Translations under genes and position numbers: made by a program
The notes under the pieces: model-generated
What the model saw: only the letters and a program-made list of their open reading frames with translations
Database searches by the model: none
Told to the model about the DNA's origin: nothing
In this document: one piece after another, positions 5,101 to 64,000 of the stretch
Layout of the letters: each line of letters starts with the position of its first letter
Position numbering within the stretch: position 1 is the first letter of the stretch
NCBI GenBank assembly: GCA_000708835.1
Contig: DF237148.1
Span: forward strand, 1-64,000
Reading direction: 5' to 3'
DNA from: Klebsormidium nitens
Taxonomy: Eukaryota > Plantae > Klebsormidiophyceae
DNA length: 64,000 nt

Positions 5101-6690
5101 CCGTGACTTGATTTAAACTTTGGCGGAACCACCCGGTCGTGCCACGTCAGCTTAATTCTGCCTACAGCATCTAAGCACTTCGCGAGGGCTTCGTTGGGCT
5201 TGCTTCCTTGTTGAGCGAAAGCGGTGACCCCGGATCCGTCTTGGATCTGGATAAGTTTGCCATTTTTGTCATGTCAAATGAAATTAGACAGTCCGACCTG
5301 AATATTGCTTTTTCTTTTCCTTATTTACAGCACCCTTAACCGGCTTCAACGTCTCCAATCTCCCCCCGGTCATGAACCAGCTGGGCCCCTTCGAAGCCGT
5401 CATCCAACTCTCTGCCTCCCCCTTCCCCGCCGCCTTCACCAGCTTCGACCAGGTCGCCTTTACCGCCTGGTGCTGGTTAGACGGCATTCAGACCCCGGCC
5501 GCGTACTTCCCACCGGACNNNNNNNNNNNNNNNNNNNNNNNNNNNNNNNNNNNNNNNNNNNNNNNNNNNNNNNNNNNNNNNNNNNNNNNNNNNNNNNNNN
5601 NNNNNNNNNNNNNNNNNNNNNNNNNNNNNNNNNNNNNNNNNNNNNNNNNNNNNNNNNNNNNNNNNNNNNNNNNNNNNNNNNNNNNNNNNNNNNNNNNNNN
5701 NNNNNNNNNNNNNNNNNNNNNNNNNNNNNNNNNNNNNNNNNNNNNNNNNNNNNNNNNNNNNNNNNNNNNNNNNNNNNNNNNNNNNNNNNNNNNNNNNNNN
5801 NNNNNNNNNNNNNNNNNNNNNNNNNNNNNNNNNNNNNNNNNNNNNNNNNNNNNNNNNNNNNNNNNNNNNNNNNNNNNNNNNNNNNNNNNNNNNNNNNNNN
5901 NNNNNNNNNNNNNNNNNNNNNNNNNNNNNNNNNNNNNNNNNNNNNNNNNNNNNNNNNNNNNNNNNNNNNNNNNNNNNNNNNNNNNNNNNNNNNNNNNNNN
6001 NNNNNNNNNNNNNNNNNNNNNNNNNNNNNNNNNNNNNNNNNNNNNNNNNNNNNNNNNNNNNNNNNNNNNNNNNNNNNNNNNNNNNNNNNNNNNNNNNNNN
6101 NNNNNNNNNNNNNNNNNNNNNNNNNNNNNNNNNNNNNNNNNNNNNNNNNNNNNNNNNNNNNNNNNNNNNNNNNNNNNNNNNNNNNNNNNNNNNNNNNNNN
6201 NNNNNNNNNNNNNNNNNNNNNNNNNNNNNNNNNNNNNNNNNNNNNNNNNNNNNNNNNNNNNNNNNNNNNNNNNNNNNNNNNNNNNNNNNNNNNNNNNNNN
6301 NNNNNNNNNNNNNNNNNNNNNNNNNNNNNNNNNNNNNNNNNNNNNNNNNNNNNNNGAAGGAGGATGAGGATGAGAGAAAAGTTGAAACTTCACATTCTTC
6401 CATACCTCCGCTGAGAATAATGAACAGAATGATGAAAATCCGGATGAAAATGAGGCGCTTCATCCCGATCTAGAGTGAATTCAGCCAAGAGAAGGATGAA
6501 GTGAGGAGGATGAGGATGAGGCGCTAAAGCTGTAATACTTACAACTCCATTACGACTTCGTGCACCGGACGCCACCTACCCGTTCCCCAGCGTCCGCTGC
6601 TTCATGAACGCGACCACATGGGGCTAGAAACAGCTCCTCTTCAGCTTGGACGGGTCGTACTCTTTCAGAGTACCGGCGCCGCTCTCGTTC
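2116..6690 (+). CDS. Four IPT/TIG domains (exons 2116-2160, 2533-2769, 3005-3349, 4667-4978, 5331-5518+6571 onward)
   Basis: YWPAMGTYKGGTNLTV...YCRF...AFSVDG; VEPPAGPPEGGHKVSV...PKCLF...SVSLNGQEY; SIYPRIGP...PLCRFG...SISMDG; fourth domain ...VRCF...LLFSLDG. These match the IPT pattern P..G...GGT.v.v / C.F / S.dG..y. Confidence 0.75.
3628..3895 (+). CDS. Two possible small phase-1/phase-1 exons (3628-3681, 3821-3895) in the intron between IPT2 and IPT3
   Basis: gttgcag|..|gtacgt and ttctttgcag|..|gtaaac. Both are open and frame-preserving (VATNELTASPSIDEAACV; VEPGYITTETTEAASSFYYYTEKK). They are not needed for the model. Confidence 0.25.
5511..6570. mobile_element. ~1 kb insertion (mostly hidden in the N gap) splitting an exon, flanked by the 8-bp direct repeat CACCGGAC
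   Basis: CACCGGAC occurs at 5511-5518 and 6563-6570. Removing 5519-6570 gives continuous TPAAYFPPD-ATYPFPSVRCF. There is no AG at the 3' edge, so it is not an intron. The visible part 6356-6562 is D/E-rich decayed coding-like sequence. Confidence 0.55.
5519..6355. other. Assembly gap (N run)
   Basis: Run of N. Confidence 1.
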
Positions 6691-40473: not shown

Positions 40474-40532
40474 NNNNNNNNNNNNNNNNNNNNNNNNNNN
40501 NNNNNNNNNNNNNNNNNNNNNNNNNNNNNNNN
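40474..40532. other. Assembly gap (N run)
   Basis: Run of N. Confidence 1.
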
Positions 40533-42095
40533 CTCCAACAATTAATTAGTTGGACGGCCCGTTGCACACGACTTGCGTGCTTCCATATTTAGAGTGACTC
40601 CATTCTCGAGTCAAGAAAGAATGGCGCACATGACTATCTCTTGACGGGGCCTGAAGGGCGCCGGCATTGGCATTGTGAGAACGGGCCGGCCCCGCGGGCC
40701 TGAAGGGAGCCGACGCGGGCGCGCTCAAGCAATCGCGGCCGCCTGAGCACTCCCCCTGCCAGCAAGCTGAGCACTGCTGGTGTACGCGCCGGTTGCGCAA
40801 CCCGGCCCCTGGCATCGGGCCAGGTCCGTCGATTCGAAAATATCGACGGTCTCAACTCACAAACCCGACATGATGTAGGTACCGAGAATGACTGCAGCCA
40901 TGTCAAATTGTGGATCCCCCATTTCCAATGTGCACAGAGCAAAATGCACATGCAAGGGCCAATGGCGAGGATGCGTCACCGTTGTGAACTGCATTCCCGT
41001 AGGACTGCGTGCTGCTGAAATGCTGCTAGCACAACAAAGCACAGCCCTTAAAGAGCTGCAAGCGTTCCCAACTCAAGCTGGCTGAGTGCACCTTAAAACC
41101 TGCTCGGATTTGGAGCTGTTGTTTCAAAAACATCATACAGCAGAATTTGATTCAAGCTTTATCAAAGCCGTTTTTCCGCCGCCTCAGCAAATTGCAGCGT
41201 GAGCTCCAAGCGACAGCTCCGAAGGCGCCTGTCAAGATTCCAGGGGGAATGGAGGCCTCTGCAAGGAACAGCCAAGTTCATTTCTCCCAGGAGGTGAGTT
41301 GCTCTGGGCAACCTTCCTATCTTTCAGTAGGTCACCGTGTCAGCACTTTTAGGCTTGCATTGTCTCAGTGACGTTGCTGAAAACAGCGCTTTATGGCCTT
41401 GAGCTTGTTCAAAGATGGGAGAGTTGCTTGTTTTGTTTCCTCCATACTCTTTGCAACCATTTTCCATCTCCTGTCCTCTTCCGGCGGTCCTCCTTTTTGC
41501 AAAGTCTCTACTATCTCATCTCCCCTCCTGCCTTACCGCTTCTCCTCCCCTTACTGCCTTCCTCTCTCTCTCTCTGTCTCTTCCACCCCTCTTCTCCCTC
41601 CAACTGTCTGCGTCCCCGTGCGCCAAGGTCCAAGCGTCCTAATAGGGTCAGTAGGCTGGAGGTATCCAGAGGACTGGCTTTATTATGAAGGAGTGACAGT
41701 ACTGTCAGTTTGGGACAGAGGAATGCGTCGGGGGGTGGTGCCTGAGGGTGTGAAAGGCCCCCCGCCAGATGCAATACGTATGTGAGTAATTCACCAGAAA
41801 CATTCTACTGCCCTGCTTCCTTAGCTGATTCGTCTTTTGGCACAGCATTCTGCCTGTGCCTTGAAAATGTCAAATGAACATCTGCATTGTCTTGATTAAG
41901 AGCTGAGGGTCTCCTAAAGCTGCTGCAGATGCTCTGAAGGTTTCCTAGCTTGTCATTCTCTATATCTCTGAACCTGCTTTTAAATGCTTGCTCAGAACTG
42001 GCTTCTCTCAGAAAGACTCTGTCAAACTTGCCTTCACACTGGCAAGCCACGTGGCAGCTTCTGACTGGCTCTCTCATCAATCCCCTATGCTTCAG

Positions 42096-45000
42096 GCGAC
42101 GCGGCGTCTGCTGCGGGACTGGAAGGAGGTGCAGAAGGAGCCTATTGACACCGTCGTGGCAAAGCCTTTGGAGAACGATCTGAGGTGCGTTGAGCGAGGA
42201 TTGTTGCTCAAACAAACTTTGCTTCTTTCTACGCTGTTAAAGCTCGTCTTAACTCATCAGCTGTTTTCTGGAGTTCACGCGCTTTCTACCGGACGGTGGC
42301 TCCCTTCCAGGGGGTGTGATTTGTTTTCTCCAGAATTTTCTCTCCAGAGTGTTGTCATGCTGCTCTTAGCTGCATCTCCAGGGGCGGGAAGCCATGTAAA
42401 GTCCAAGCAAGTTTCTTAACCCAAAAATGCAACCGGGATTGCTCACCCGCTCGCGAAAGGGGGGAAACGAGGAAAGAGAGAACCTTTCTGACACTCAAAA
42501 AGCTCGTTCCTGCAGCGAATGGCACTGCAATCTGATCCCGGACGAGGGCCCCTACCAGGGTACCGCCTTTCACCTCATCCTCAAGTTCCCAGTGGACTAC
42601 CCCAACACCCCCCCAAACGTCCGCCCCTGCACCTTCCTGAGTCACCCCGTGAGTGTAACGCTGGGCCTGCTTCCATTCTCTACGTTTCACAAACCGGTTC
42701 CACCTGCTGATGGAGGGCTTTCACCAACTCAGGTTTACAGCTTGAGAGATAGAGCTCGCGCAGGAGCAGCACTTTCAACGACAATAAAGAGCTGGTGAGG
42801 TCTAGGAAAATCTACGTTTCTATCCTAACGCTGTAAACCGCGGGAGTGTTTTTGGTACGTTAAGGCTCCTCGGATCTGCCTTTATTACGTTGCTTAGAAC
42901 CTGCTGCGCCCCACGAAGGTAGATCGGATATGTGATGATGCATCGAGGGTCAGTTTTTCCCTAAGCTCTGCTGATGCCTTTCCTTCCGCTCATTGCAGAA
43001 TGTTTTTGGCGACTGGATCTGCCTGGACATGATCAAGGAGCCCGAGTATTGCTCGAGACCATACCAAGGTCAGCCTATATTTAACGATAAAAGCTCGCCA
43101 CGGGGTTCGTATCCATGACAGCTTGGTCCACACTCATAGCCCCAATAAGAATGCCCCGTTATTAGCATAGCTGCGTTCCGCAGACCGCCGCTGTCTGAAA
43201 AACCTAGGGCAAATCGAAGGGCTGCGTTTCTAGGCGTTACAGGGGAGACTTTAATGGCGAGAATGGTGGACGTGTCAAATAAAGGGACCTCTTCAGCACT
43301 TTATGCATCTGTTGGGCCCAGAATGGAATCCCGTGATCGTGTGCAGCCGCGCGCCTAGTTCAAACACTGGCTGGGCGTCTCCACATTTTTGGGTGTTCCA
43401 GAACAATCCTTAAGGTCACTTTGATCGTCCAGGGACATACTCAGAATTGGACACGTGTCGTTTGCAGGTTGGTCCACGGCGTACAGCGTCCAAAGCGTCC
43501 TGCTACAGCTCCAGAGCTTCCTGTTTGCCGAAAACGTGCCCCAGGTCAGCTCAACCACCTTCTAACCGCTTTGTTAACACCCCATGGACCAGGTCTACTC
43601 AGCCTTCTCCAGATCTTCCGCATCGTGTCAAGAAGGACAGCATACACGCAAACATGATCAGAAAATTTTTAGGATTCCTGAAGAGACGTTCTTATTGAAG
43701 AGTTGCAACGGCCGCAAATTTGTTGCCGTTTCCATCCTAGAGATTCCTGCAACTTACTCTTGGTTGTTCAAGAGCTTAAAAGCGTTCAGGGAGACCTTTG
43801 TGGGATGAGATTTGTTTGAATCTGCCATAAGCAGCGGTTTGACAGTACTGGCAGGAATGCTGTTGCATAGCAGCAAACTATATCCTAACTAATCGCACCA
43901 AGTCGCTGAAGGCTCTACTGCACAGTTTCTTATTGTGATTCTTTCCGTCTGTTTCAGACGCGTTATGTCCGGTTCTTAATCTGTTCCGTCCGTTGAGCCT
44001 TGTGCAGGACTGGGGTGGCAACAGCGTCAACCGGGCGGCTGGGTCCGAGATCGCCCGCGCCAAGCGCGAGGCTGCAGCTTTTCACTGCGCTGAATGCGGG
44101 TTTAGGGGCTTTAGCAACGCCGCGGCCACGGCCCCAAACCTCCCCCGGGATGGGAATACCGTGGTCTTGAACGGTCGGGTGAGACAAACCTGGGACATCA
44201 CACCAATCCCTCGACTCGTCTGTCGTTTCTCGGTGCCTTCTGCAATTCCCGAGGTGCTCTTGTTTTGGCCCGCTCCCTCTACTTAAATGAACCTGATGGC
44301 GACCTTGTGATCTGCTTCATCATTGCGTTGTCTCGTCTTACGTCTCTTCCTGTTTGTAATTCTTCGAAATCCCAATTCTCCAGCTCGCCCGCTGGGCCAA
44401 CAACCTCGACGACACCGTGGAGGAACGATTCACCGTCCGCACCCGTGGCGAGGTCCGCACGCCGCGGACGCCCGATCACCGCGGCCGCGCGCCGCGCGCG
44501 CGCCCCGTACCCAACACCGTCAACGAGCTCATAGCCCGCGCTCTCGACAGAAGCGCGCGCGCCGCCAGCCCGTCGGCGTCCGAGGCAAGCTCGGAGGGCG
44601 GCCGCGTCGCGCCCACGGAAGCGCTCCAGAGCCCGCCACGTGTCCCCACCTCCCCGCCCACCCAATCCCCACAAACCTCTGCCAAGTCCTCCAACACCCC
44701 CGCCAAAGTCGTCGTCGTCCCTGCGCCGCGAGGACCTCCGACCCTACCAAACCCTGGGCCGGCAGCGGCGCCCCAAACCGTGGCAGACCCTGAGCCGGCC
44801 GCGGCGCAAAACCCCGAAACCCCGGCGGACCGCCTGAGCGAGCTCTCCACGGACGTCCTGGTGCAGATCCTGGACCGCCTGGACGCGCCGTCGCTGTCCG
44901 CGCTCGTGCGCGCGAGCCGACACTACGCGCGCGCGGCCACGGAGCGCGGCGCTTGGGTGCGCCGCGAGCTGCAGTGCTTCCACACGAAGCGCAGCTTCGG

Positions 45001-48000
45001 CGAGGAGGTTTTGGGGTTTGGGGTTGCGACCAAGGGCGAGGAGGTTGAAAATGACGGGGACTATGGGTGTCCGTGTCCGATGTGCAGACCGGACCGGCGG
45101 GCGGAACGGAAGCCGAAGGTTAGGGGCCGCTGGGAGCCGGTTCTCTCGATGGACTATCTCTCGGCGGGGGCGTTTTTTGAGGGGGGGGTACGGCGGGGCG
45201 TTTGGAACGAGAGGTAAGCGTAGGTCTGAAACAGTTGGTTTCTGACTACAGCAACTAAGTTAGATCAGCAGTGGCTGCTGGACATTGAAACATCCGGTTC
45301 GCCAAGGTGGTTCGTCAGGAACTGAATTTATGCTCACTCGTTTGCCAAGCTCAAGTAGATGTCTTTGGGAAGGTTTGCCTCAGAGGAGACGAAACATGAT
45401 CGTTACCTGCCTGCTCTCGTCAGTATACCTTCTCTGTTTCCTGTTGGAACTTTGTATTCTGAACCTGAAGCTTCCGGATTGACAGACTCGAAAACTCCAC
45501 TTACCTTACCCGAATGAATTAAGAACTAGTCGTGAAACAGAACTTACCCGATTGAACCTGAAGATTATTTGTGAAACAGAATCTCACCTTTTGTCCCTCA
45601 GGTTGGAGTGGTGGCTTCCTCTAATCTTGGACGACCAGCACTGCGCGCGCGCACTCCCCCTCCTCAAGGGCACCATCGCGGCCCTCGCCGCGAACCCCCG
45701 CCGCCCCTCCCTGCCGCGTGCTGATATTTTGCGCCACAGCTTCTCTTCTCTCGACACCCTGAAGGTGGGCACACTTACATTCTTCATCTGTGAAGTAAAC
45801 TTCTGGCAAGACATTTCCACCAAGAATACGAACTTAAAATGATAAGCTTCCCAATCCTGGTTCTCGTTCCGGATGTTGTGGAGTCCTGCCAACTGTGCTC
45901 GACCGAGTAGCTTGGAAAGTATGCTTCAGATCTCATCCTTCAGCATCCGATGAGTCAAGCTAAAGGTCCGGTCAACGCTGCAGGGAGTCGATTGCACATC
46001 TCGCAAAAGCTTGATATAAAACTCCTTCTTATTTCCTCGATTGGTTTCAAACTCCTGCTGGACAAGACTAGACTCCTGTGTCTAAATCTTCGATTCTCGG
46101 GTTCCTTTTCCGCAGGTCCTTCCTCGGCTCATGAATGGCATGGTGGTGTCGTTCATGAAGCAGGGGAGCGCAGGAAACAAGGCCGACCTGCACGCCTCCG
46201 AGAAAGCGCTCCTAGGGTAAGCCGCGTTTAGCGTCTCCGCTTCCACCCTTTTTTGCTTCTACATTTCCTTCTGGTCACCTGAGAAGCAGGGAGTTCAGTT
46301 TCGATTCACAAGCAATTAATGTGGCAAGAGTCGGTGCCAGGCAAGTGACAACGCAGCATGCAAGCGTCAATGTTGCACGATCCTGCCCTGCCTCTAAGTG
46401 AAAAGCAGAGCGATCGACTACTCTGATCATTCTGGCACCAGCACCCACAGATTGGCATCCTCGTGGCTCAGGATTCCGGTGCCTGCGCTCACGCCTTTCC
46501 CAATAAATTCGTTCGTTCGACTCTTCATATTTCTCATATTCCAGTTTCCTCTTTCCAGGGCTCATTCTAAGCTTCCACTTCCAAAGTTAGATTGAACGTC
46601 AGAACCCGTTCACGTCTGACACCGTTTTAGCGCTGCAGGGGGGGCGCTCAGAACTGCTAAAACAGATATTTTTGAAACTCTAGGTGATCTTCTAAAATTC
46701 AGTTCCCTCAACAATAAGAGCATTCCCCGGATGCAGCTACTGCCAGCTGCACCACATGCTGCTGCGCCTGGCCCAGGACTACCCGGCGCTCCAAACAGCG
46801 ATCGACCGGGCACTCTCCCGCTTCCAATCCACCCCCACCGCTCGGCACAAGAACGAGACCCCCGACCTGGGGGAACTGCTGGTGCTGCTCAGCGTCGCCA
46901 AGACCGGGGGGGTCACCTGGGACAGCCTGGCGCCCGCCTTCGTTGCGGAGACGTTCGACAGGTGCGCGCGCATTCTTCCACTTCGTGCGATCACGACCGC
47001 CCGTGACGCAGACCTTACACAAGCATAGGCTATCGAGCGGAACATGGCGTTCGTTTCACCCTCATTGAAGATTTAAGTCAGAAGCGGCCGACAGAGTCCT
47101 AGCATCTCAGTCCTCTCTTTTTCCAAATCCTTTTAATGGAAAGCCCTTGTCTTATGCTCCAACCTATCCTCGTTCCGCAAAAGCACGGATGCTAGGCTGA
47201 CGTCGTGCAGGATATTGTGACGTCATCTGACGTCATGCTCACGTTTGCAGGAACGTGCTGTGGCTGCTGCGCGAGCACCCGGAGCTGGCGGTCCTGGAAG
47301 CGGCCGATTGCGTATCGGAGCACCGCCTCGCCACCACCTTCAACGCGACCGCGACCTCGCGGCGGCTCATCATGTTCCAGGTAAGGGTTGTATCTTTTTG
47401 AGGAGGGTTTAGGACCACTGCATCTTAGATTATTGATTTCATGTATTGACGCTGTTTCTATTGCTAGGAATTGAACCTTGATTGTTAGGTGAGGATTATC
47501 ATCACAAACGTACACTTTTTCTTTGCCCTCTGGGCTGTACCGAAAGAAACCATCTTGTTGCTTCATCAGCAGTACTAAAGCGTTGAGATGGATTTACAGG
47601 AGGCGTACGCTCTGGCACATCGCACTGCACTTCTGAAAAGCTGTGGACTGTGGCACGCCCTATTCGCGCTTCTGAGAGCACACTGAAATGCTGTGTTCAA
47701 GCAACCCGCTGAACATTCATTGAGAAATTGGAAGTCACCGTGCACTTTTTCCTTTAGATGTTGGCGACAGATTGGGATACGCTGACCTGATTCTGTCAGA
47801 AGAACTTGTGTTCTGAATCTTCGGGTGTACAGTCAAGTGCGCTCTCTCCTCGACTATTCTCTTGCATATCTCCAGAATTCAGAATGGACGACTTTGGAGT
47901 ACGCACCTTCTTCAAATGGATTCGTGCAGCTTGCAAGACAAGTGCAAAGGCTAGACGGGTCAGTTCCCAGAAATTTATTCTGAAGAAAGCTAGCAGTTCT

Positions 48001-48778
48001 GACTCCGATTGCTGACGTGCAGGTGGCGTTCCTGCTGCTCGTCCGTCCGTCCGGCAGTTCCGTCCGCGACATCCTGGCGGAATATGGGCAGCGGTACGGG
48101 TACCCGCGGCCGGGCCTCACGCGCAAGCTGCAGGAGACCTGGTACCGCGTCCGAAAGGTTAGTCCACCCCACGTGCGGTAGCCTAAAAATCTGCTGAATG
48201 TTAACGCTTTCAGATCTTCAAGGATTCACTTCAGAAGGCATGATCGCTTCAGCATGCTAGACACCATTCCTCGTAATCAGATTTCTCGATCTGCATTGCG
48301 AGCTCCACATAGTTGCTTCATACTTTCTTCCCATTAACAAGTCAGCCCCTCATTTTTATCGTCCCGCTTCTCATCTAAGGCCAGGACCTCACGTGTTTGC
48401 TTTAGCTCCCAGGTTAAATCTCATCCCATGCTGTTTATTTCATCGTTCTTCTGCGCAACTCTCACGTCTTCCTATGCCTCCCAGGTTGCCACGTGGCCCG
48501 CCTACTTCGCCGAACTGGGCCTGCCGTGCCCCTCCAACCCTGCGCTGTCCAGCATGCTACGTCAGGCTGTCGTCAGCAGCAGCAGGAAGGGCTACCATTC
48601 AGTCGAGCGGCTGCGCTCAGGCCTGAATTTGAGGGGCCTTGTTTCACTGCGGCAGCAAAAAGAGCGGGCTCGGGGCGTGAGTCCTAGCGTGACGGGCCGG
48701 AGGGAAACGGGGCCTTGGCGGCGGGAGGGGAGGGACAATGCGGAAGGGAATGGTGAGAGCTTATGGCTGCTTCCTTGA
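42096..48778 (+). CDS. Ubiquitin-conjugating enzyme (E2) domain protein with CxxC, F-box-like motif and conserved unnamed C-terminal domain; copy 1, intact (~810 aa plus first exon)
   Basis: Exons 42096-42184, 42516-42648, 42999-43068, 43468-43544, 44008-44178, 44384-45213, 45602-45764, 46116-46216, 46737-46961, 47251-47380, 48023-48157, 48485-48778; all phases consistent. UBC: RRLLRDWKE..EWHCNL..GPYQG..FHLILKFPVDYPNTPP..HPNVFGDWICLD..GWSTAYSVQSVLLQLQSFL. F-box-like: LSELSTDVLVQILDRLDAPSLSAL. Candidate ATG exon 41249-41293 (MEASARNSQVHFSQE|gtgagt, phase 0). Confidence 0.85.
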
Positions 48779-49145
48779 AGATATATTATTAAGGACGATG
48801 GAAGTAAGCCCGAAAGACGCTTTTGCGAAGTTAGTTCAAGTTTTTCTACACGTGTCCTTTTCACCAGGTCGGGGGTCTAGTGGGACCGTGAAATTGTGAG
48901 CCCTGAAGCGGCCTTCATCTCAAAGTCCTGAAGTCATGTGCTTTCACTTGACGTTTAGTTGACAGCCTACCGAAACAATCCACTACTTTTGTACCAAAGA
49001 CATCCGTCTTACCAGCGAAGCTGAACGCTGGCTTGTAACTCTCCGTGCTTACTTGCCATCCTTTTGACGCGGACGGCAAACTTGACTCTGCCGCATACGC
49101 TGCCAGGTTTTTTTGAAAGTGACCAAAACAGACTCTTGCTCGCAG

Positions 49146-49315
49146 GCCCTGTTTCGAGCGCGAGCAGCGGTCAGCCACAGCCTTCTTCGTGGTGGGACAG
49201 ACCTAACAGGGCCTCCTCTACTGCGAGAGATCAGAGGGCTGCACCTCGTCAGCCGAGTCAACCGACTGTAGTTAGCTTGAACCCCTTCGCTGTTCTTGAA
49301 ATAGATAGTGAATAG
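49146..49315 (+). CDS. Possible alternative or true last exon of E2 copy 1
   Basis: A donor AAT G|gtgaga at 48753 (phase 1) joins tcgcag|GC CCT in frame to give GPVSSASSGQPQPSSWWDRP...SLNPFAVLEIDSE*. Confidence 0.3.
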
Positions 49316-54286: not shown

Positions 54287-57200
54287 TCAAACCAGGCAGT
54301 TTGGATAGTGCGCGCGCAGAGTGGGTTCGTACCGCCTCCTGAGGTCCAGCAGGTCTCGCGGGTGGCCTTGCCAGAGCCGTTTCATTGAGTGGTAGCCCTT
54401 CTGGCTGCTGCTGACAACAGACTGACGCAGCGTGGAGCAGAGCGCGAGCGATGTGGGGGGGCACGCCAGGCCCAATTGGGAGTAGAAGTCGGGCCACGTG
54501 GCAACCTGAAGTGATGATAAGAATAGTTCATGATGTTTCCGCGTGCGTTCACTCTTTCTGCTTGTTGGTATTCCTCAGAGCTGGTCTCGTCGGAAAGACA
54601 ACGTTTCCGGCAAAAGGCTTGACTTTCTTTGTGGACTGTAACCAAGCGGAACGGCTTTTTCGTTTGGGAATGTTGGAAACTGAAAGCTCTCCACTCCTCC
54701 TCCTGAATTGAGGCTGGTTCAGATAAAGAGAGCTGGATCACTTCAGTTTAAAGACGTTTTTCGGATAATTATACCGCATTTGTTCAGATTGCCCCACCTT
54801 AAGCACGTCGTACCATGTCTTCTGCAGCTTGCGCGTGAGGCCCGGCCACGGGTAGCCGTACCGCTGCGCGTATTCCGCCAGGATGTCGCGGACGGAACTG
54901 CCGGACGGACGGACGAGCAGCAAGAACGCCACCTGCACGATCGCCAGGCAAGTTCTCAATTGCTTTTTCCTGAATGTGTTCTGTACTGCTTTCCTCCTCG
55001 CTTTTGAGTATTCACCTTGATCAGTTTATACGTCCTGCAAATTGCTATAAAACTCCAACAGCTCAAAACTGGTTGATTCTTGTTCCGAATGGGACTCCAC
55101 CATTCCTACATCGCCACCCAGCTTGAAGGCTTTTAGGAGCCTAAAAGATCTTGTCGGTCAAATCTTCTAATGTCTCCTCTTAATGTAGTACTAACTCTTC
55201 ATGGAGCCCCTAACAAGTTAAAAAGGTTCACGGAACTCACGCAACGCCTACCTGGAACATGATGAGCCGTCTTGTTACGGCGGTCTCCCTGAAGGTGGTG
55301 GCCAGGCGGTGTTCCGACACGGTGTCGGAGGCCTCCAGAATTGCCAGCTCGGGGTGCGCCTTCAGGAGCCACAGCACGTTCCTGCACACGTCATCGTGAC
55401 GTCCGGAAATGATTAAATCTCAGGTTACTCACACATTTCAGCACCATCCGGCCGTAAGTAGCTTGGTGTGGACTGAAAAAGCTACACTTCTGGTTCCTGA
55501 TTCCTAGCAGTACGAGTTGCAAACCTGCACTAAGCTTGGACAATGAAGAAAGACCTACGAGATCTAGACATTGATTATGCTCTATTGGGAGGCCGAAGAA
55601 GAACTAGCGTAGAGAAAGCGTTACCATATACTCTGCTCAAAGCCCTTATGTCAAGCGAGCCCCGATTGTGCACAAGATAAAAGCAGACACTCTCTAATGG
55701 CCGCGCGCGCACCTGTCAAAACTCTCCGCAACGAACGCGGGCGCCAGGCTGGCCCAGGTGACTCCCCCGGTCTTGGCGACGCTCAGCAGCACCAAAAGCT
55801 CGCCCAGGTCGGGGGTCTCGTTTTTCTCCCGAGCGCTCAGGTTGGAATGGAACCGAGAGAGTGCTCGGTCGACCGCCGCTTGGATCACTGGGTAGTCCTG
55901 TGCCAGGCGCAGCAGCATGTGGTGCAGCTGACAATAGCTGCAACCGGGGAAGATTGGGACTGTCTGAAAGTAGCTGCGGGGTTACAGATAGTCCGCGAGG
56001 GTTTTGCAAGCTGGCCTATGCTGGCGGACTGTTAGAAGGCGCACGTGCCACATCATGCTTGTAGAACTTACGTGTATATGTGCCAGCTTCGAAAAGTAGG
56101 GAAAACTCCTTGAAACGAAGTGAATATGCTTTTCTAGCAGATCCGTTTTCCTCCATCTAACTGAGGCATCTTACAGTCCTATTCAAGCGCGTATTGAAAT
56201 AAACGCGTCGCAGCCAAAACCTGCACATTCACCCCGCTTGACTTGTGATGAAAGCGCCGTCTCTTGGCTCAAATAAAAACGAGGCTCACCCCAGAAGAGC
56301 TTTCTCAGAGGCGTGCAGGTTCACGTGCTTTTCTGAGCCATCCTGCTTCATGAAGGAGACCACCATGCCGTTCATCAGGCGGGGGAGAACCTGCGGGAGT
56401 ACAGCTAGAGAAGCTTCGCCTGTGATGTATTTTTCTGGGTTCAAGCATTGAAAGTCCTGAAAGTTAGACCAAGTCGAGTCACAAAGAGATTGCGGCTTTC
56501 GTAAGTGAGGCATTCAGGAAAGTGAACGGTCGAATGGACAATGCAGTGGCCCTTCGCGCCAACTGAGAAAAATATCTTTGAAATGTTTAGCGAGTCTGCA
56601 TCTCATTCAAAGAATTAAGACGTCGTAAGGGTCATTTTTTCCGGAGGAAAGTAAGTGAAGGGATGCTCAAATCAGAGGTTCAGAGATAAGAGGCCAGAAG
56701 GCGCGCTCAAAACGCAAAACGCAGGTTCTGATGATTTTCCTCTTGTAAACGCCCACCTTCAGTGTGTCCAGCGGCGAGAAGTGCCGCGCCATGTCCAGGA
56801 TGGCGACATGTGTCACCTTCGAGCGCCGGGGGTCCGTGGCGAGCGCCGCGATGGTGCCCTTAAGAAGCGGGAGCGCGCGCGCGCAGTGCTGTTCGTCCAG
56901 GAGCAGGGGGAGCCACCAATTCAACCTGGAGACGACGCATCGGTGATGTGAGCCTGAGTCTTTCGAAGGTATTGTCAAACAGAAACAGAGGATCAGCATG
57001 AGTTTCTGACTTTCTAACTTCAGCTGCTGCGTTAAGCACAGGGTGTAAAAGTTTGTCTCTGACTTTCTTTTCTTCCCTATTTTTTTTGAGGGCTGATCTC
57101 GTCTTGTAACCAGATTTTAGGATTAATTAAACGACAGCTTGCAGCCAAGCGGGTCGAAGACCAAGTGCAGCTTGATTGGCAGGCCTTCGGTCACGCTTCG

Positions 57201-60083
57201 CATGTGACTTTAGGTCCATCCGCCAGCCTGTCCCCAACAGAAACTACATTGCTTCCTAAATTTGTCAAGTGAAGGCTAATACAAATCAAAAACGCATCTC
57301 TTAATGTTCGAAATCAGAGCTTACCTCTCGTTCCAGACGCCTTTGCGCACTCCGTTCTCGAAGAACGCCCCCGCCGAGAGGTAGTCCATCAGCAGCACGC
57401 CCTCCTACCGCTTCGCGCCCGGCGTCTCCAAACCCTTCACACTCATCCCAAACCCCAAAACCTCTTCGCCGAAGCCGCGCTTCGTGTGGAAGCACTGGAG
57501 CTCGCGGCGCACCCACGCGCCGCGCTCCGTGGCCGCGCGCGCGTAGTGCCGGTTCGCGCGCACGAGCGCGGAGAGCGCGGCCGCGTCCAGCCGGTCCATG
57601 ACTTCGACCAGGACGTCCGCGGGGAGCTCGCTCAGGCGGTCCGCGGCCGGGTTGCGCGCCGGGGGTTTGGACGCGGCCGGCGCGCTCGGGCGCGGGGTTT
57701 GGGCGGCTGAGGGCCGGGCGGCTGGTGTGAGGGCGAGACGCGCGCGCTTCGACGAACGGGCGGATGCGCTCTCCGAGTCGTAAGAGGAGTCCTCAGGGTC
57801 GCCAGAAGCGGTGCAGGGATCGTCGAGCGAGCCAACGCGCTGGCACAAGAAGGGATGGGACTCAGATACAAGCTTCGCCATTAACTTCTCGAATCCGAAG
57901 CCAACCACATGTTTGGATCGTAGCGGCGGATGATTTTGACGCCGGGGTGGCGGACATTCTTCGGGCAGGTTTTGCATCGTCTTCTGCGGATGGCTCTCTA
58001 GTTGTGTGCTCTTGTACAATGGTGCAAGAATCATGAATAACCCGCATAAGAATCAATTGCCAACTCTCGATCCCGTTTTTCGTACGAACACTTAACCCGC
58101 AGATGTCATTTCTACATTACCTGAGCATCACAGGCGGCCTGCGCACTCTCCCGCGCGCGCTCTCCTGCCGCGATCGCCGCACCCCTGAACCCGCAGCCGG
58201 CGCAGATGAACGCGGCCGCGTCGCGCCGGGCATCTTCGACCTCGTTCTGGTCGGCTCTGTTGACCACTGTATACACTTTGCTTGCCGCAGCGTGCCTGTA
58301 CTCGTCGGGGTCATCGTCTGAGTCGGACGCATCTGGATCTTGAACCTGCAGTGCCCCAAGTATTGTTTATCTTTCTGCCTCCTGAACGAAAGGTGCCGGA
58401 GGAATACGCGTAGCGAACCTTGAGAAGAGGTTCCTTGAGCTCATGATCTTTGCTTCAAACTTGACACGGTAAAGATACCAACTACGACCAACATCTATTG
58501 AACTTGATTGTGTCCATTTTAACTCATATCCTGCAGGGAATATCGGACCAACAGCTATTCATCTCAACAGTAGCGCACAAGGCTCAAAGTTTTAAGATAT
58601 CGTTTACCGATCATGCGGTGGAGGCTTGGGATTCGTTGATTTTTGTCCTTTGTCGAAGGAAGATGACCTTGTTGGGGAAGAATTAAGCTGACCTGGGGGA
58701 CATTCTCCGCGAACAGGAAGCTCTGCAGCTGCAGCAGGACACTCTGGACGCTGTACGCCGTGGACCAACCTGGGAGCGACACGTGGTTGGCTTGGTGAGA
58801 AGCGACTTGCGGATGCATTTGATTACCAGCATATGAGCCGGCACTTTGAATGATTCCAATTGAGAAGCTTTTAGCGAGGACGATTCATCTGTTCGACTCC
58901 GGTGACAAGCACGCGGGAAAGATCTAGGGCGTACCAAAGGTAGCAGACACGCGTCTCCGTCGATGCAGATAGAAGTAGATTGTATAGTACGGAAGATGGC
59001 TACATGTTTCATAGATCTATTGAAAGTGAAACACAGATTTCAATCCCCGTCAGGTGATTGACCGGGACTTGCGGCTACATCTAAACCCTAGCCCGGCACT
59101 GAAGCACGACATGGATCCCCCAATGACCAAACGAACTAGGCCTGGCAATCTTCTAGTAGCGTAGTCAGACTTTTGCACAGTCTTTCTCACCTCGATACGG
59201 CCCGGAGGCTTCTTCCGGTTCCTTGATCATATACAGGCAGATCCACTCTTCAAAAACGTTCTGCAAACGCAAGAGCATAAAATGTTGCATCTCAGGTTTC
59301 TCAATTAGCTCTCAGCAACCCGATCGCTCAGCTTTGAGTTGGTTTTCTTTGTCATAAGCTCCTTTCTTTCAAAAGCATCCAGCGCAGCCAGTCTCTAAGG
59401 ACAATTGCAACCTTTACCGGATCTCCGCAGTTCTATTTGCATAGTCCAGTTCAGGACTCAGCAGATCCAAAAACGAATCCACTGAAGGCCGGTGGTTTTT
59501 GGCAGAATGGCAACAAACTAGAAGTCGTCCGAATAAAGGAGAAGGACGCAAATAAAACACAGAATTGACAGTATGTCACTTACCGGGTGGCTCAGGAAGG
59601 TGCAGACGCGGACAAAGGGAGGCCGGTTCGGATAGTCACTCGGAAATTTTAGCACGAGGTGGAAAGGGATCCCCTGGTAGGGGCCTTCGTTTGGTTGAAG
59701 CGTGCAGAGCCATTCACTGCAAAAAGTGACGCAGATGCTGAGCAGCAGTTGGCTTGAGACGTGACGTCAGCGTGCAACCGGAAAAGGTTTGAGGAGCGTT
59801 GACTTCAGCAAACGAAGCACTTTACGCAAGCAAATCGCCTCCGATGAGGGATTATGACAGATGGCAAACGTCTCATGCCAGTTGGCAGATGAGAAGCTTT
59901 CTTTACATTCTTCTCTGCCAACGTGGACGCCTGGGACGCATAGTCTCAGAAGGACGAAAAATTGCCGTGGCCCGGCTGAGAGAGCCTGCATCACCTAATG
60001 TCTTTCTCAAGGGGTCTCGCCTTGACGGTGTGAATTGGCTCTTTCTGCACCTCCTTCCAGTCTCGCATCAGCCGTTGTTGTGC
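54287..60083 (-). pseudogene. E2/F-box-like paralog copy 2 with an in-frame nonsense codon
   Basis: Exons (minus) 59995-60083, 59584-59716, 59191-59260, 58693-58769, 58121-58345, ~57990-57325, 56757-56925, 56290-56390, 55713-55937, 55252-55381, 54798-54932, 54287-54505. Intron positions and phases match copy 1. TAG at 57405-57407 aligns with TGG (W) at 45131 of copy 1. First exon not located. Confidence 0.8.
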
Positions 60084-61260
60084 CTGCACAGACATTTAGG
60101 TTCCAGAATCTGATCACCCAAATTGAATTCAGGTTGTATTGTTTTAAATGGATACACATCAATCACAATGATTGTATCAGTCAAGACTGTCTTTCAGATG
60201 TGGAGCTTTGTAATCGGAGCTGCGGGCAGTGGCTTGGGTCAGCCAGCTGAGATTGAGTGGCTGCTTTATCCAAGGTCATATCTCCTGAACAGGTGGTTAA
60301 GTGAAAGCATCGTGTATGTCCAGCATAGGGATGCTTCAATGTTCAGAAAGTTCTGCACATAGGATATGAACCTGTGGTTGGACGCTTGGTGCTCTCAATC
60401 AGAACGTCTTGAGAGGAAACATGTCTCTAGCAAAGCAGAGACCTGTGAACCCTGCGAAGAGCAGAGTCCAACTTTCTGCAGGTTCCTGGGACTTTTTAAC
60501 TCTGGCCAGCACTTCGGAATTTGAATGCCCTCCTTTCCTCGCTTGTTGCTTATTCTAAATCTTGAAGTATTGCGTTGACATGCCCTCTGATCTCTTCGCA
60601 AATGGAGTGTCCTCTGTCAGAACCTGGGATTTTTTGAGCGAATAATTGGAAGGGGAGACGAGAGAGAACAGGGGAGTCATCTGCGCTCTTTCAGTACTTG
60701 GCGGGGCAGACACGTCTCTCTTTCATGCATAGCATATCCGCTGCATCAACTACTCTCAATCTACTCCATGCAAATACAATATCAGATCTCTTCTCCGATG
60801 TCCAGATCAGGCCGCCTTTTGCGTGAGAGTGATCCTTCTGGACATCCTCTTGAATATAACAATGCTCTTCCATGTGAAGATATCTGTCAAGAATTTTAGA
60901 ACAGATTCTGCGAGAGTATCTCGCAGAACGTAAGAGACTTCGCGTGTCTCTGCACAAAGGCAACAATAGCTTATTACGATCACAATCAGGCTTGATCAGG
61001 AATCCTCAGCAGCTTTCCTGCACTTACCTCTTTTGAGAGGGGATCCCTCCTGTCAGTACTTCTGTAACCCATTGCTCCGGCTTGTCACTTCAATCAGAAC
61101 GGCCCCTGCCGTCCTCCAACTATGCAAAGCACGTCTTGCAATGCTGTAGAGGGGCAAGGTTGCTTGCGAGATGGCGACTTTGACCAAAAGCGCTCTGATT
61201 GTTTGTTGTAATTTCTGATAACAAAAGACGCATGCTCTTTTAGAGACTACTATAGTGACC

Positions 61261-62068: not shown

Positions 62069-64000
62069 TCAGATCAGGCAGGTATGGTACTGAGTACGCA
62101 TGGCCGGTTCGTACCGCCACCTCAGTTGCATCAGGTCCTCCCGGCGCCCATGCCAGAGCCGCTTGATCGAGTGGTAACCCTTCTGGCTGCTGCTGACGAC
62201 AGACTGACGCAGAGTCGAGCAGAGCGCGAGCGGCGTGGGAGGGCACGCGAGGCCCAGCTGGGCGTAATAATCGGTCCACGTGGCAACCTGCACGTGATGC
62301 AGTGCATTATTTGCACGACCTGCTTTTCTTAGTGTGGACATAATCTCTCCCGCCGGGACGAGGAAATATCCGGCTACCAGAAAGCATTCGCAAGGAAATG
62401 CGTCTCCCAAGCCATCGAGTAATCTTGTGTTTATCAAAGGCCAGATCTAAGTACGGCGTCAGGAATCAGAGGTACTCATTCGTGATGTACCTCAGTTTTC
62501 AGATCACGATGCCACGAATCACGCTAGCTTCTCAAGCGTCTTTGACGTCGAGCCTCGTCGCAGGATTGTAAACGTAGGGTATCGTTGCGGATCCCTCACC
62601 TTCAGAACGTCGTACCACGTCTTCTGCAGCTTGCGCGTGAGGCCCGGCCGCGGATAGCCGTACCGCTGCGCGATTCCGCCAAGACGTCGCCGACGGAACT
62701 GCCGGACGGACGGACGAGCAGCAAGAAAGCCACCTGCACCCAAAAGGCGGAATACCATTCTAAGCCCCGGCTGATTACTGTTCGCAGATGTTTCGTAGAC
62801 GCTACTTGACCAAAGACTTAAAGCACAAATGAATAAGAATACAGGCCGCCTGTCATCATCTGGAACCAATAATGACAGACTCACGAAATGTGGAGGAAGA
62901 TCCAAATCTCTTAGCATAGAACTGCCAGAACCAAGATCTTGCCAACGGAAAGGCTGAAGGCCTGTTCCTCGAAACGTGGAACTTTAACCCCGCTCAAGGA
63001 TACTGCTACCCTGCTCAAAGGTGGTGAGAGACTCAGAGCTTTTGGTATAGCTAGAAGCCAAAGCTAACAAAATTGCTCAACGCCCCACCTGGAACATGAT
63101 GAGCCGCCTGGAGACGGTGGTCTCTTTGAAAGTGGTCACCATGCGGTAGTCCGACACGTGGTCCGTGTTCTCCAGGACTGCCAGCTCGGGGTGCGACTTC
63201 AGGAGCCACAGCACGTTCCTGCACACGTCAGCATCACTTCAGCACCTGCTCAACAGTTTGAAACTTGGCAGAATGTTGGGAGGTCGTCAGAGCCGGACCG
63301 CCGATGGGAGACTTTGGTATTCACCGTCGTTTCAGGAAGCCTCCTTTTCGTAGACCGTTCCCACTGCGGTTTTGCTGCTCACGTGATTTCGTGTTCACCT
63401 TGGTGACGTCCTCGCCAAGTTACGGCAACTTCGCACAACGGTGAGTTTATTCAACGATGTGCATTGCTGGCGAGACATCAGACCGCCCAAGAGTAGGTTA
63501 GCGGGTCAATGAATAAATCTCTTCTTGCGAACCATGAATTTAGGGTGCGCGTCGACCGAAAAGCTGCAAAAAGCTTTCCAGATTTCTTAGCCAATCGGGT
63601 GGCTTCTTAGGTCCACGTGTAAACCCAAGGTAAATCCAAGAGGAGTGACAAGGCTTAAAAAGTACGTAACTCCTGCCCGTCGTTACTGCAAAGGCAACAC
63701 TGGAGGCCATGTAGGATTACGGTCGACGCGCAACCTCAGACTTATCCCTCCCCCTCCACGCGAGTGCACCAGTGAAATGACGTCAGCCGCCGCGCACGCA
63801 CCTGTCGAAGGACTCCCCCATGAACGCGGGCGCCAGGCTGGCCCAGGTGACTCCCCCGGTCTTTGCGACGCTGAGCAGCACCAGCAGTTCTCCCAGGTCA
63901 GGAGTCTCGTTCTTCTGCCGTGCGCTCGTGTTGTCTTGGAAGCGGGAGAGTGCCCGGTCGATGGCGTCTCGGATCTCCGGGTAGTCTTGGGCCAGGCGCA
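62069..64000 (-). pseudogene. E2/F-box-like paralog copy 3, 3' part only, with a 1-bp deletion
   Basis: Exons 63802-(beyond 64000), 63089-63218, 62600-62733 and 62069-62287. The 62600-62733 exon is 134 nt versus 135 in copies 1 and 2: GAA T-C GCG versus GAA TAC GCG, near 62672. Motifs TPDLGELL, RNVLWLL, SRRLIMFQ and SSQKGYH are present. Confidence 0.8.

Follow-up and report, generated by a model that had tools for sequence, protein, structure and literature searches.

Klebsormidium nitens expresses a single-chain fusion of an E2 ubiquitin-conjugating (UBC) domain, an F-box and a conserved C-terminal module. On balance, we read this protein as a single-chain E2-E3 enzyme that combines a RAD6-like UBC, an F-box serving as a dock for SKP1, and a UBR4-type E3 module. 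The gene, which we call copy 1, lies with two paralogues (copies 2 and 3) in a window of 64,000 nucleotides, the whole stretch of DNA that was analysed (Table 1). The first-pass annotation of this DNA had proposed a self-contained ubiquitination module; the fusion of E2 and F-box on one chain holds, whereas the logic of the module would be changed by the E3-type fold predicted for the C-terminal region.

Table 1. Positions of copy 1, its domains and its paralogues in the window
Feature	Position	Strand	Remarks
Copy 1 coding region	41249..49315	+	14 exons, 868 aa; = P0028
Copy 1 exons 1-5	41249-41293, 42096-42184, 42516-42648, 42999-43068, 43468-43544	+
Copy 1 exons 6-10	44008-44178, 44384-45213, 45602-45764, 46116-46216, 46737-46961	+
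Copy 1 exons 11-14	47251-47380, 48023-48157, 48485-48752, 49146-49315	+
Alternative upstream exon, 3' end	41753..41781	+	Spliced to 42096; loose end, all four runs
UBC (E2) core	42096..43544	+	Residues ~16-138, four exons; UQ_con match
HPN motif	His88-Pro89, 42643-42648; Asn90, 42999-43001	+	Intron splits motif
Catalytic Cys97	43020-43022	+	Codon TGC
Exon after UBC core	44008..44178	+	Helix, then FHCAECGF motif
FHCAECG	44080-44100	+	Semi-conserved C-x2-C-G-[HF] motif
Pro/Ala/Ser/Arg-rich linker	44384..44830	+	Residues ~196-344
F-box	44831..44968	+	Residues 345-390, RLSELSTDVLVQILDRLDAPSLSALVRASRHYARAATERGAWVRRE
UBR4-type hemiRING-like and UZI-like module (predicted)	44963..48583	+	Residues ~389-756, exons 7-13
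C-terminal tail, Arg/Ser/Gly-rich	48584..49315	+	Residues ~757-868; intron 48753-49145
Copy 2	54287..61072	-	P0003, GAQ84651.1; exon structure as copy 1
Copy 3	62069..64000	-	P0027; 3' part only, continues past the window

Gene structure, transcripts and family

The copy 1 protein is already annotated in GenBank, as "protein with Ubiquitin-conjugating enzyme domain" from Klebsormidium nitens, and our gene model agrees with it, P0028 being identical in sequence. Ten introns, all GT..AG, are supported by spliced RNA contigs from four runs in four studies. A single contig of 1423 nt, corresponding to exons 2-8, links the F-box exon with those of the UBC; further contigs from the four studies overlap and carry the transcript on to exon 12. 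The first junction (41293 to 42096) is based on loose contig ends, and the last two introns on paralogue conservation, P0028 and a K. subtile transcript (P0001) in which a single ORF takes in the F-box and C-terminal region together with the rear half of the UBC. All of the elements listed in the first-pass annotation are present and fall into one reading frame after splicing, as judged from the spliced contigs and the open frame; a separation of the UBC and downstream exons onto different transcripts, which had been raised there as an objection, is not what we find, one contig joining the UBC and F-box exons.

Both ends of the gene as first drawn lie elsewhere. Position 42096, taken as the start, is where the second coding exon has its acceptor, and translation begins one exon earlier, with the start codon at 41249; the ATG at 42087 is rejected as a start codon and must be intronic, because in the contigs 42096 is joined directly to exons further upstream. 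A coding role for the alternative exon ending at 41781 was likewise considered and rejected, and we regard this exon as a non-coding leader, since the frame upstream is closed, with no ATG in phase. The supposed end at 48778 is a stop read within an intron of the annotated model (48753-49145); it was replaced as the gene end by 49315, on the strength of P0028 and the K. subtile ORF, both of which terminate there.

The transcript evidence consists of assembled RNA contigs rather than raw reads, none of them singly spanning the whole coding region, and this leaves some room for a chimera of two separate genes, a UBC gene and an F-box gene downstream of it, fused by read-through or mis-assembly. 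Against such a chimera, which we consider highly improbable, stand the contig shared by the UBC and F-box exons, the overlap of further contigs as far as exon 12 in four studies, a spliced frame free of stops over every junction, and a layout that recurs not only in the three paralogues and K. subtile but also in more than 25 proteins whose source assemblies and transcriptomes are unrelated.

Copy 2 shares 70% identity with copy 1, with a dN/dS between the two of about 0.1-0.2. Its counterpart of exon 7 contains an in-frame TAG (57407-57405), which the annotated copy 2 model sidesteps by using another donor, so that about 25 conserved residues are lost; a short intron excising the TAG was ruled out, there being no plausible acceptor. 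In copy 3, the counterpart of exon 12 has a 1-base deletion (62673/62672). To judge from the genomic sequence, then, both neighbouring paralogues appear to bear one disabling lesion each.

Beyond the window, the phyletic survey suggested earlier reveals a layout conserved across many eukaryotes, and sporadically so: members occur in green and streptophyte algae, Picozoa, one foraminifer and one diatom, with ascomycete and rotifer members assigned by fold match. The UBC is present in 26 of the 32 aligned members, and the F-box and C-terminal domain in all full-length aligned members. Accessory domains (SPRY, RRM, VWA, TerD) vary among members, while the three core modules are constant. It had been stated that no characterised plant protein has this layout; we too found no paper on one, but the protein is annotated in GenBank and the family is not specific to plants. 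Full-text searches on E2/F-box fusions and on the hemiRING turned up no account of the layout; a mention in the survey of E2 architectures by Burroughs et al. 2008 is possible.

The E2 domain and the F-box

The complete UBC recognised at first sight, with its HPN motif (His88-Pro89-Asn90) and catalytic Cys97, is borne out by the Pfam match that had been suggested as a check: P0028 scores 77.2 bits against UQ_con (PF00179) over residues 19-134, well above the cut-off of 27, and exon 2 of copy 1 by itself matches at 3.4e-10. Among 23 aligned family members, the HPN motif and the catalytic Cys are invariant or nearly so. The best 14 PDB sequence matches of the copy 1 UBC are all UBE2A, UBE2B, RAD6 or UBC2 (75.8-65.5 bits), compared with about 57-61 bits for UBE2D; at the level of the family profile the margin is small, with 103.9 bits for the RAD6 type versus about 96 for UBE2D. 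By its best-scoring solved relatives, the copy 1 UBC therefore appears to be RAD6/UBE2A-like.

A study of UBR4 (PMC10873205) names Arg7, Arg8, Arg11, Arg95 and Ser97 of UBE2A/UBE2B as determinants of UBR4 binding. Arg18, Arg19, Arg22 and Ser115 of copy 1 align with UBE2B Arg7, Arg8, Arg11 and Ser97, and the equivalent of UBE2A Arg95 is Gly. Beside this Gly, before a Trp-Ser pair in the E3-contact loop, copy 1 has a 9-residue insertion. Across the family, the helix-1 Arg trio is near-invariant at its second position only.

The UBC is followed, as first described, by FHCAECG and a Pro/Ala/Ser-rich linker. The C-x2-C-G-[HF] motif to which FHCAECG belongs occurs in roughly half of the family members, and some others have His-rich variants in its place. 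The linker is poorly conserved among the paralogues, and in other members a SPRY domain occupies the same interval. A composite zinc site made of the C-x2-C motif together with Cys393 and His395 of the C-terminal module was considered and set aside, as the motif did not co-vary with His395 in alignments inspected by eye.

The F-box string of copy 1 is LSELSTDVLVQILDRLDAPSLSAL; the string quoted in the first-pass annotation, LSELPADVLVEVMDRLDAAALSAL, is that of copy 2 (at 57635, minus strand). The motif reported for the second copy is indeed found there, with Leu-Pro. In copy 1, helix 1 begins with Leu-Ser, replacing a near-invariant Leu-Pro that copies 2 and 3 and K. subtile keep, as do at least 90% of family members. 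The proposed F-box is thus well founded in the family and less so in copy 1 itself, where Ser stands for Pro and both Pfam scores fall below the gathering scores (F-box-like, PF12937, 17.9 versus 24.3 bits; F-box, PF00646, 15.5 versus 20.5 bits). The K. subtile orthologue P0001 passes the F-box-like threshold (25.4 versus 24.3 bits), and Pfam detects F-box-like in 16 of 32 members (best 2.9e-10) and F-box in 8 of 32. When the family profile of this region is compared with the PDB, 46 of 50 matches are F-box proteins; SKP2 is at the top (6.8e-8), and FBXW7, KDM2B, FBXO31 and FBXL5 are among the others. The region also groups with F-box clusters at 0.95 on atlas features, and the predicted structure places the F-box helices at model residues 6-51.

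The Leu-Ser of copy 1 and its sub-threshold scores could alternatively mean that the protein is an E2-E3 hybrid that acts alone, like UBE2O or BIRC6, and does without SKP1, its F-box being a structural cap or a vestige. The structural model, in which F-box and hemiRING-like element form one rigid body with no linker between them (pTM 0.86), would accommodate such a role, and F-box proteins acting independently of SCF are known (PMC3814724). We nevertheless judge this decidedly unlikely: across very distant lineages, at least 90% of members preserve the F-box consensus with its Pro and hydrophobic pattern, and the match of the family profile to SKP2 extends over the entire SKP1-binding part. 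The simplest explanation of this conservation would be that the F-box binds SKP1.

A C-terminal module of predicted UBR4-type fold

The large conserved region noted downstream of the F-box is present and is about 370 residues long, rather than the ~330 first given. Klebsormidium has a specific loop insertion within it (residues ~412-445) that contains CPCPMC, and the tail that follows is poorly conserved beyond Klebsormidium. Pfam searches with this region from 10 members gave nothing meaningful at E up to 10, and a PDB sequence search with the C-terminal family profile gave no match over the same range; a sequence-level tie to the UBR4 C-terminus, which we take to be the Pfam family PF13764, was not found in either the Pfam or the PDB profile searches.

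AlphaFold2 models of the module reached pLDDT 90.7 with pTM 0.89 and pLDDT 88.1 with pTM 0.86, and VIA-align matched a model to UBR4 (8btl_A) with Z 21.7 (rmsd 4.2 A, 301 residues aligned; runner-up Z 4.2), superposing model residues 50-417 on UBR4 4833-5183, which is the whole resolved module. When 48,161 chains were searched exhaustively, UBR4 scored Z 18.3, yeast Ubr1 8.6 and every other chain at most 6.1. The C-terminal region is therefore predicted to have the fold of the UBR4 hemiRING-UZI E3 module, and what had been called a large unnamed domain would not be an anonymous targeting domain. Homology to UBR4 would have this fold as its one basis, the fold being itself predicted. With a fold of this type, the likely logic of the protein would be that of an E2 and an F-box with their own E3 module, and not that of an E2 with a substrate receptor.

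The UBR4 module consists of a hemiRING subdomain, with Cys4838, Cys4841, His4887 and Cys4890 (C2HC) as zinc ligands, and an 11-helix UZI bundle. It recruits and modestly activates UBE2A/UBE2B, and UBR4 activity reportedly relies on its zinc finger (PMC10873205). The corresponding C-x2-C ... H-x2-C pattern is absent from the C-terminal module in the family alignment, where the only conserved candidates in the hemiRING-like region are Cys393 and His485 (each 27/27) and His395 (20/27).

The missing ligands mean that the C-terminal module may have lost E3 function. The protein could instead, as first proposed, be a conventional SCF receptor with a built-in E2, in which the F-box would engage SKP1-CUL1-RBX1, the C-terminal domain would do nothing but bind substrate, and the tethered UBC would give ubiquitin to the SCF-bound substrate. 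At family level the F-box is genuine, and the receptor role in F-box proteins normally falls to the domain behind the F-box. Yet a mere receptor would hardly be expected to have a fold that uniquely matches two RAD6-binding E3 modules while the fused E2 is itself RAD6-like, and other members add separate candidate substrate-binding modules in the form of SPRY, RRM, VWA and TerD. We regard a receptor of this kind as unlikely.

Proposed mechanism and related systems

In the single-chain E2-E3 enzyme that we favour, the modules would follow one another in a fixed order, from the RAD6/UBE2A-like UBC through a disordered linker to an F-box that is directly continuous with the domain of hemiRING-UZI fold. 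The binding and catalytic steps, as we infer them, would begin with the loading of ubiquitin onto Cys97 by E1. The hemiRING-like element may then contact the fused E2, in cis or from one molecule to another, by way of the surface that UBR4 recognises on its E2, namely helix 1 with Arg18, Arg19 and Arg22, and the F-box would bind SKP1, possibly inside a CUL1 complex. Substrates might be chosen by the variable SPRY, RRM, VWA and TerD modules in other lineages, and by the linker, the tail or SKP1-bound partners in Klebsormidium.

E2s and E3s are normally separate proteins. Surveys of ubiquitin-system architectures also describe the accessory domains of E2s as few and exclusive (PMC4327156). The fusion of a RAD6-like E2 to a predicted fold that has otherwise been seen only where UBR4 and Ubr1 recruit RAD6-type E2s offers a natural test of E2-E3 pairing and, at less than 900 aa compared with 574 kDa, a compact system for the study of E2 activation by such a module. 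The hemiRING-like domain may function without the zinc site that UBR4 needs. With an F-box rigidly joined to a module of E2-binding type, one may ask whether an SCF scaffold could also accommodate a built-in, second E2-E3 unit. The wide but sporadic distribution of the family suggests an overlooked and unstudied branch of the ubiquitin system. More tentatively, these proteins may represent an ancient, patchily kept eukaryotic class in which a RAD6-type E2 and a UBR4-type module are fused and wired to SKP1, with a zinc-free hemiRING and swappable targeting modules; we hold this as a possibility that, if true, would link the UBR ligase module family with the SCF machinery.

Several known systems resemble parts of this arrangement. 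UBE2O and BIRC6 have a UBC inside a large protein and are thought to be independent of a separate E3. Their UBC domains belong to other subfamilies and lie near the C-terminus, and neither protein is known to have an F-box or a hemiRING-UZI fold. With SCF proteins of the SKP2 and FBXW7 type, the family shares an F-box whose profile covers the complete F-box of SKP2 (positions 8-54, E 6.8e-8). In copy 1, however, the F-box is followed by a predicted E3-module fold and not by an LRR, WD40 or Kelch receptor, the E2 is on the same chain, and Ser replaces the F-box Pro.

The E2 itself is most like RAD6, UBC2, UBE2A and UBE2B, whose HPN motif, catalytic Cys, helix-1 Arg trio and Ser97 equivalent are kept in copy 1. 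It differs from the RAD6 type in its loop insertion and in the change of the Arg95 equivalent to Gly, and in being followed by the C-x2-C-G-[HF] motif and about 700 further residues. The RING and cap-helical domain of yeast Ubr1, solved with Ubc2 (PDB 7mey; 247 residues, chain 1289-1654, Z 8.6), likewise recruits a RAD6-type E2, but the structural match is far weaker than that of UBR4, and the Ubr1 RING is a full, two-zinc RING.

UBR4 (p600/BIG; PDB 8b5w, 8btl) is a 574-kDa N-degron ligase, whereas here the module ends an 868-aa protein, after the E2 and the F-box. The sequences are 12-13% identical and give no match at HMM level, and the zinc ligands are missing in copy 1 save for one Cys near the position of Cys4838. 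Both nonetheless would have a long-looped beta-hairpin ahead of a bundle of helices, and the partner E2s of UBR4, UBE2A and UBE2B, appear to be the closest relatives of the E2 that is fused to the module in copy 1.

Gene structure and expression

The window is eukaryotic DNA with a G+C content of about 52% and two assembly gaps, assigned by exact protein matches to the streptophyte alga Klebsormidium nitens (K. nitens), and it holds three paralogous copies of the E2/F-box gene, copy 1 lying on the + strand (see table). Exons of the copies share 74-92% DNA identity while introns are not alignable, so the exons are well delimited; for the pair of copies 1 and 2, the UBC exons have a dN/dS of about 0.1 and the C-terminal exons one of 0.2.

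The sequencing runs matching the copy 1 stretch are RNA, since their contigs are spliced. Compared over 42050-48049, contigs from four runs of four studies contain ten joints, all GT..AG and all at sites predicted from paralogue conservation. One 1423-nt contig (X6, record 21) leads from the first UBC exon to the F-box exon and into the next exon, and overlapping contigs extend the transcript to the exon starting at 48023. The acceptor at 42096 is joined in contigs from two alternative upstream exons; an ATG at 42087, considered as the start, is therefore intronic. The last intron, 48753-49145, lies outside the RNA contig comparison and rests on P0001, the Klebsormidium subtile (K. subtile) orthologue, whose transcript ORF reads through the same junction; with it, the copy 1 model encodes 868 aa and is identical to the GenBank protein P0028. 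The objection that the UBC and downstream exons might belong to separate transcripts thus fails, because spliced contigs, one joining the UBC exons to the F-box exon, agree with a model identical to P0028. A chimeric annotation, in which a UBC gene and a separate F-box gene had been merged, is close to excluded.

The canonical frame is intact only in copy 1 among the three copies. In copy 2, a TAG interrupts the counterpart of copy 1 exon 7 in frame, immediately preceding the conserved MDYLSAGAFF segment; recent pseudogenization, variation between strains or an error in the sequence could account for it. The GenBank model of copy 2, P0003, uses a different donor that bypasses the TAG, at the cost of about 25 conserved hemiRING-like residues. 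Relative to copies 1 and 2, copy 3 has a 1-base deletion in its counterpart of exon 12, reading GAAT-CGCG versus GAATACGCG, where the database model P0027 omits about 17 residues. Upstream of copy 1, a long run of open frames with Cadherin-like beta-sandwich, filamin/ABP280 and GEX2-type Ig-like repeats (Pfam E down to 5e-35) is probably a single very large multi-repeat gene.

Features of the window and of the three paralogous copies
Feature	Coordinates	Strand	Remark
Assembly gap (run of N)	5519-6355		
Run of open frames	~6600-28200	+	repeat domains
Assembly gap (run of N)	40474-40532		~700 bases upstream of copy 1 start exon
Start exon, copy 1	41249-41293	+	in-frame ATG at 41249, spliced to 42096
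Alternative upstream exon, copy 1	41753-41781	+	closed frame, non-coding leader, spliced to 42096
F-x-C-x2-C-G-[HF] motif, copy 1	44080-44100	+	after UBC core
Klebsormidium-specific insertion, copy 1	45020-45150	+	residues ~412-445
Copy 2	61072-54287	-	
In-frame TAG, copy 2	57407-57405	-	
Copy 3	beyond window to 62069	-	
1-base deletion, copy 3	62673/62672	-	

The E2 and F-box domains

The proposal of a complete UBC domain with HPN and a catalytic Cys is borne out. UQ_con scores 77.2 bits on P0028 against a cut-off of 27, and both His88-Pro89-Asn90, which is interrupted by an intron, and Cys97 are conserved across the family. Among all PDB sequences, the 14 best matches of the copy 1 UBC are UBE2B, UBE2A, RAD6 and UBC2 (75.8-65.5 bits), with UBE2D-type E2s next (~57-61 bits); a family-profile search places UBE2A first by a narrow margin (103.9 versus ~96 bits). 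Copy 1 resembles UBE2B in that Arg18, Arg19, Arg22 and Ser115 align to Arg7, Arg8, Arg11 and Ser97, but differs in having Gly at the Arg95 position of UBE2B/UBE2A and, relative to UBE2B, nine additional residues ahead of Trp-Ser. The F-x-C-x2-C-G-[HF] motif is retained in about half of the family (alignment A4), and some members carry His-rich strings (F-H-x2-H-G-H) there; it may be a metal site, for which partner ligands were not found.

The F-box-like motif of the first-pass annotation holds for the family; copy 1 alone misses the Pfam thresholds (17.9 versus 24.3 and 15.5 versus 20.5), with Ser at a site that is Pro in at least 90% of relatives. The K. subtile orthologue exceeds the threshold (25.4 bits), and Pfam F-box-like is matched by 16 of 32 members (best 2.9e-10), F-box by 8. 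A profile of the region matches SKP2 (6.8e-8), FBXW7, KDM2B, FBXO31, FBXL5 and others, F-box proteins making up 46 of the 50 matches listed; the alignment spans the entire SKP2 F-box, and language-model features are consistent with the assignment, which is clear at the family level on sequence grounds. We also considered an E2-E3 hybrid acting independently of SKP1, a reading compatible with the subthreshold score of copy 1 and disfavored by the family-level matches.

A C-terminal module with a UBR4-like predicted fold

The "large unnamed domain" indeed lacks a sequence match in Pfam or PDB, but its predicted fold can be named. AlphaFold2 models built with the family alignment reached pLDDT 90.7 and pTM 0.89 for residues 445-790, and 88.1 and 0.86 for residues 340-790. 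At TM > 0.25, Foldseek returned only 8b5w and 8btl_A, the human UBR4 E3 module alone and with UBE2A. VIA-align gave Z 18.6 against the UBR4 module for the shorter model (next 5.7) and Z 21.7 for the longer (rmsd 4.2 A, 301 residues; next 4.2), superposing model positions 50-417 on UBR4 4833-5183, the whole resolved hemiRING + UZI module (PMC10873205). Exhaustive scoring against 48,161 chains ranked UBR4 top (Z 18.3), followed by yeast Ubr1 in its structure with Ubc2 (Z 8.6, residues 1289-1654), all others scoring at most 6.1, consistent with the remark that the UZI fold is elsewhere seen only in UBR1-3 (PMC10873205).

As in the UBR4 hemiRING, the model predicts a beta-hairpin with a long loop, here partly disordered, followed by short elements and, after these, a helical bundle. 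The last F-box helix is modelled as passing straight into the UBR4-aligned segment, about 5 residues into which invariant Cys393 would lie near the position of UBR4 Cys4838, an approximate equivalence. Unlike UBR4, the family has not kept the C2HC zinc signature; in the region, conservation is marked only at Cys393, His395 (20/27) and His485. The module is thus UBR4-like in fold without one defining feature, and may be a zinc-free hemiRING-UZI variant. The Klebsormidium-specific insertion in the predicted hairpin loop, modelled as disordered, carries C-x-C-x2-C (GCPCPMC). The insertion is shared with K. subtile (P0001) and the family member P0002, and copies 2 and 3 lack it.

Family distribution and a single-chain E2-E3 reading

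With the F-box and following segment as query, only 23 proteins among 1.84 billion representatives were found at E <=0.001. In BLAST with the whole copy 1 model, most full-length relatives align both in the UBC domain and in the F-box with the C-terminal domain, among them P0021 (residues 16-761, 34% identity); word-based searches added further members. Members assigned to an organism come from K. nitens, K. subtile, Mesotaenium, Cymbomonas, two Picozoa, the foraminifer Nonionella and the diatom Seminavis; one further member is an MMETSP transcript. In an ESM Atlas structure search, the C-terminal fold recurs in two clusters, one ascomycete (929 aa; UQ_con, TerD, F-box-like; TM 0.81) and one commonest in rotifers (594 aa; UQ_con; TM 0.80). 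Accessory domains vary, with SPRY between UBC and F-box, RRM at the C-terminus, and VWA or TerD in long forms; E2, F-box and hemiRING-UZI-like module are constant, in that order.

The fusion as such is already in databases, since GenBank annotates the copy 1 protein and precomputed Pfam annotations show UQ_con together with F-box. A literature search, its scope leaving Burroughs et al. 2008 aside, found no paper describing the E2/F-box/C-terminal-module layout, and none was found connecting an F-box or E2 fusion with the hemiRING-UZI fold. In a survey of ubiquitin-system architectures, E2 accessory domains are exclusive, with few connections to other nodes (PMC4327156). On the predicted structure, the protein would belong with the E2-E3 hybrids, its new element being the UBR4-like assignment.

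The first-pass annotation had raised the possibility of an SCF receptor to which an E2 is tethered. The family-level F-box is compatible with that version, while the UBR4-like fold suggests an E3 module on the same chain. Most simply read, the protein is a single-chain E2-E3 enzyme uniting partners that are cognate in trans. Its C-terminal module would hold and activate its own fused E2, and the F-box would dock the enzyme on SKP1, substrates being brought in by variable modules or by partners. In UBR4 and Ubr1, a RAD6-type E2 and a UBR-type E3 module partner in trans, whereas in copy 1 they lie on a single chain.
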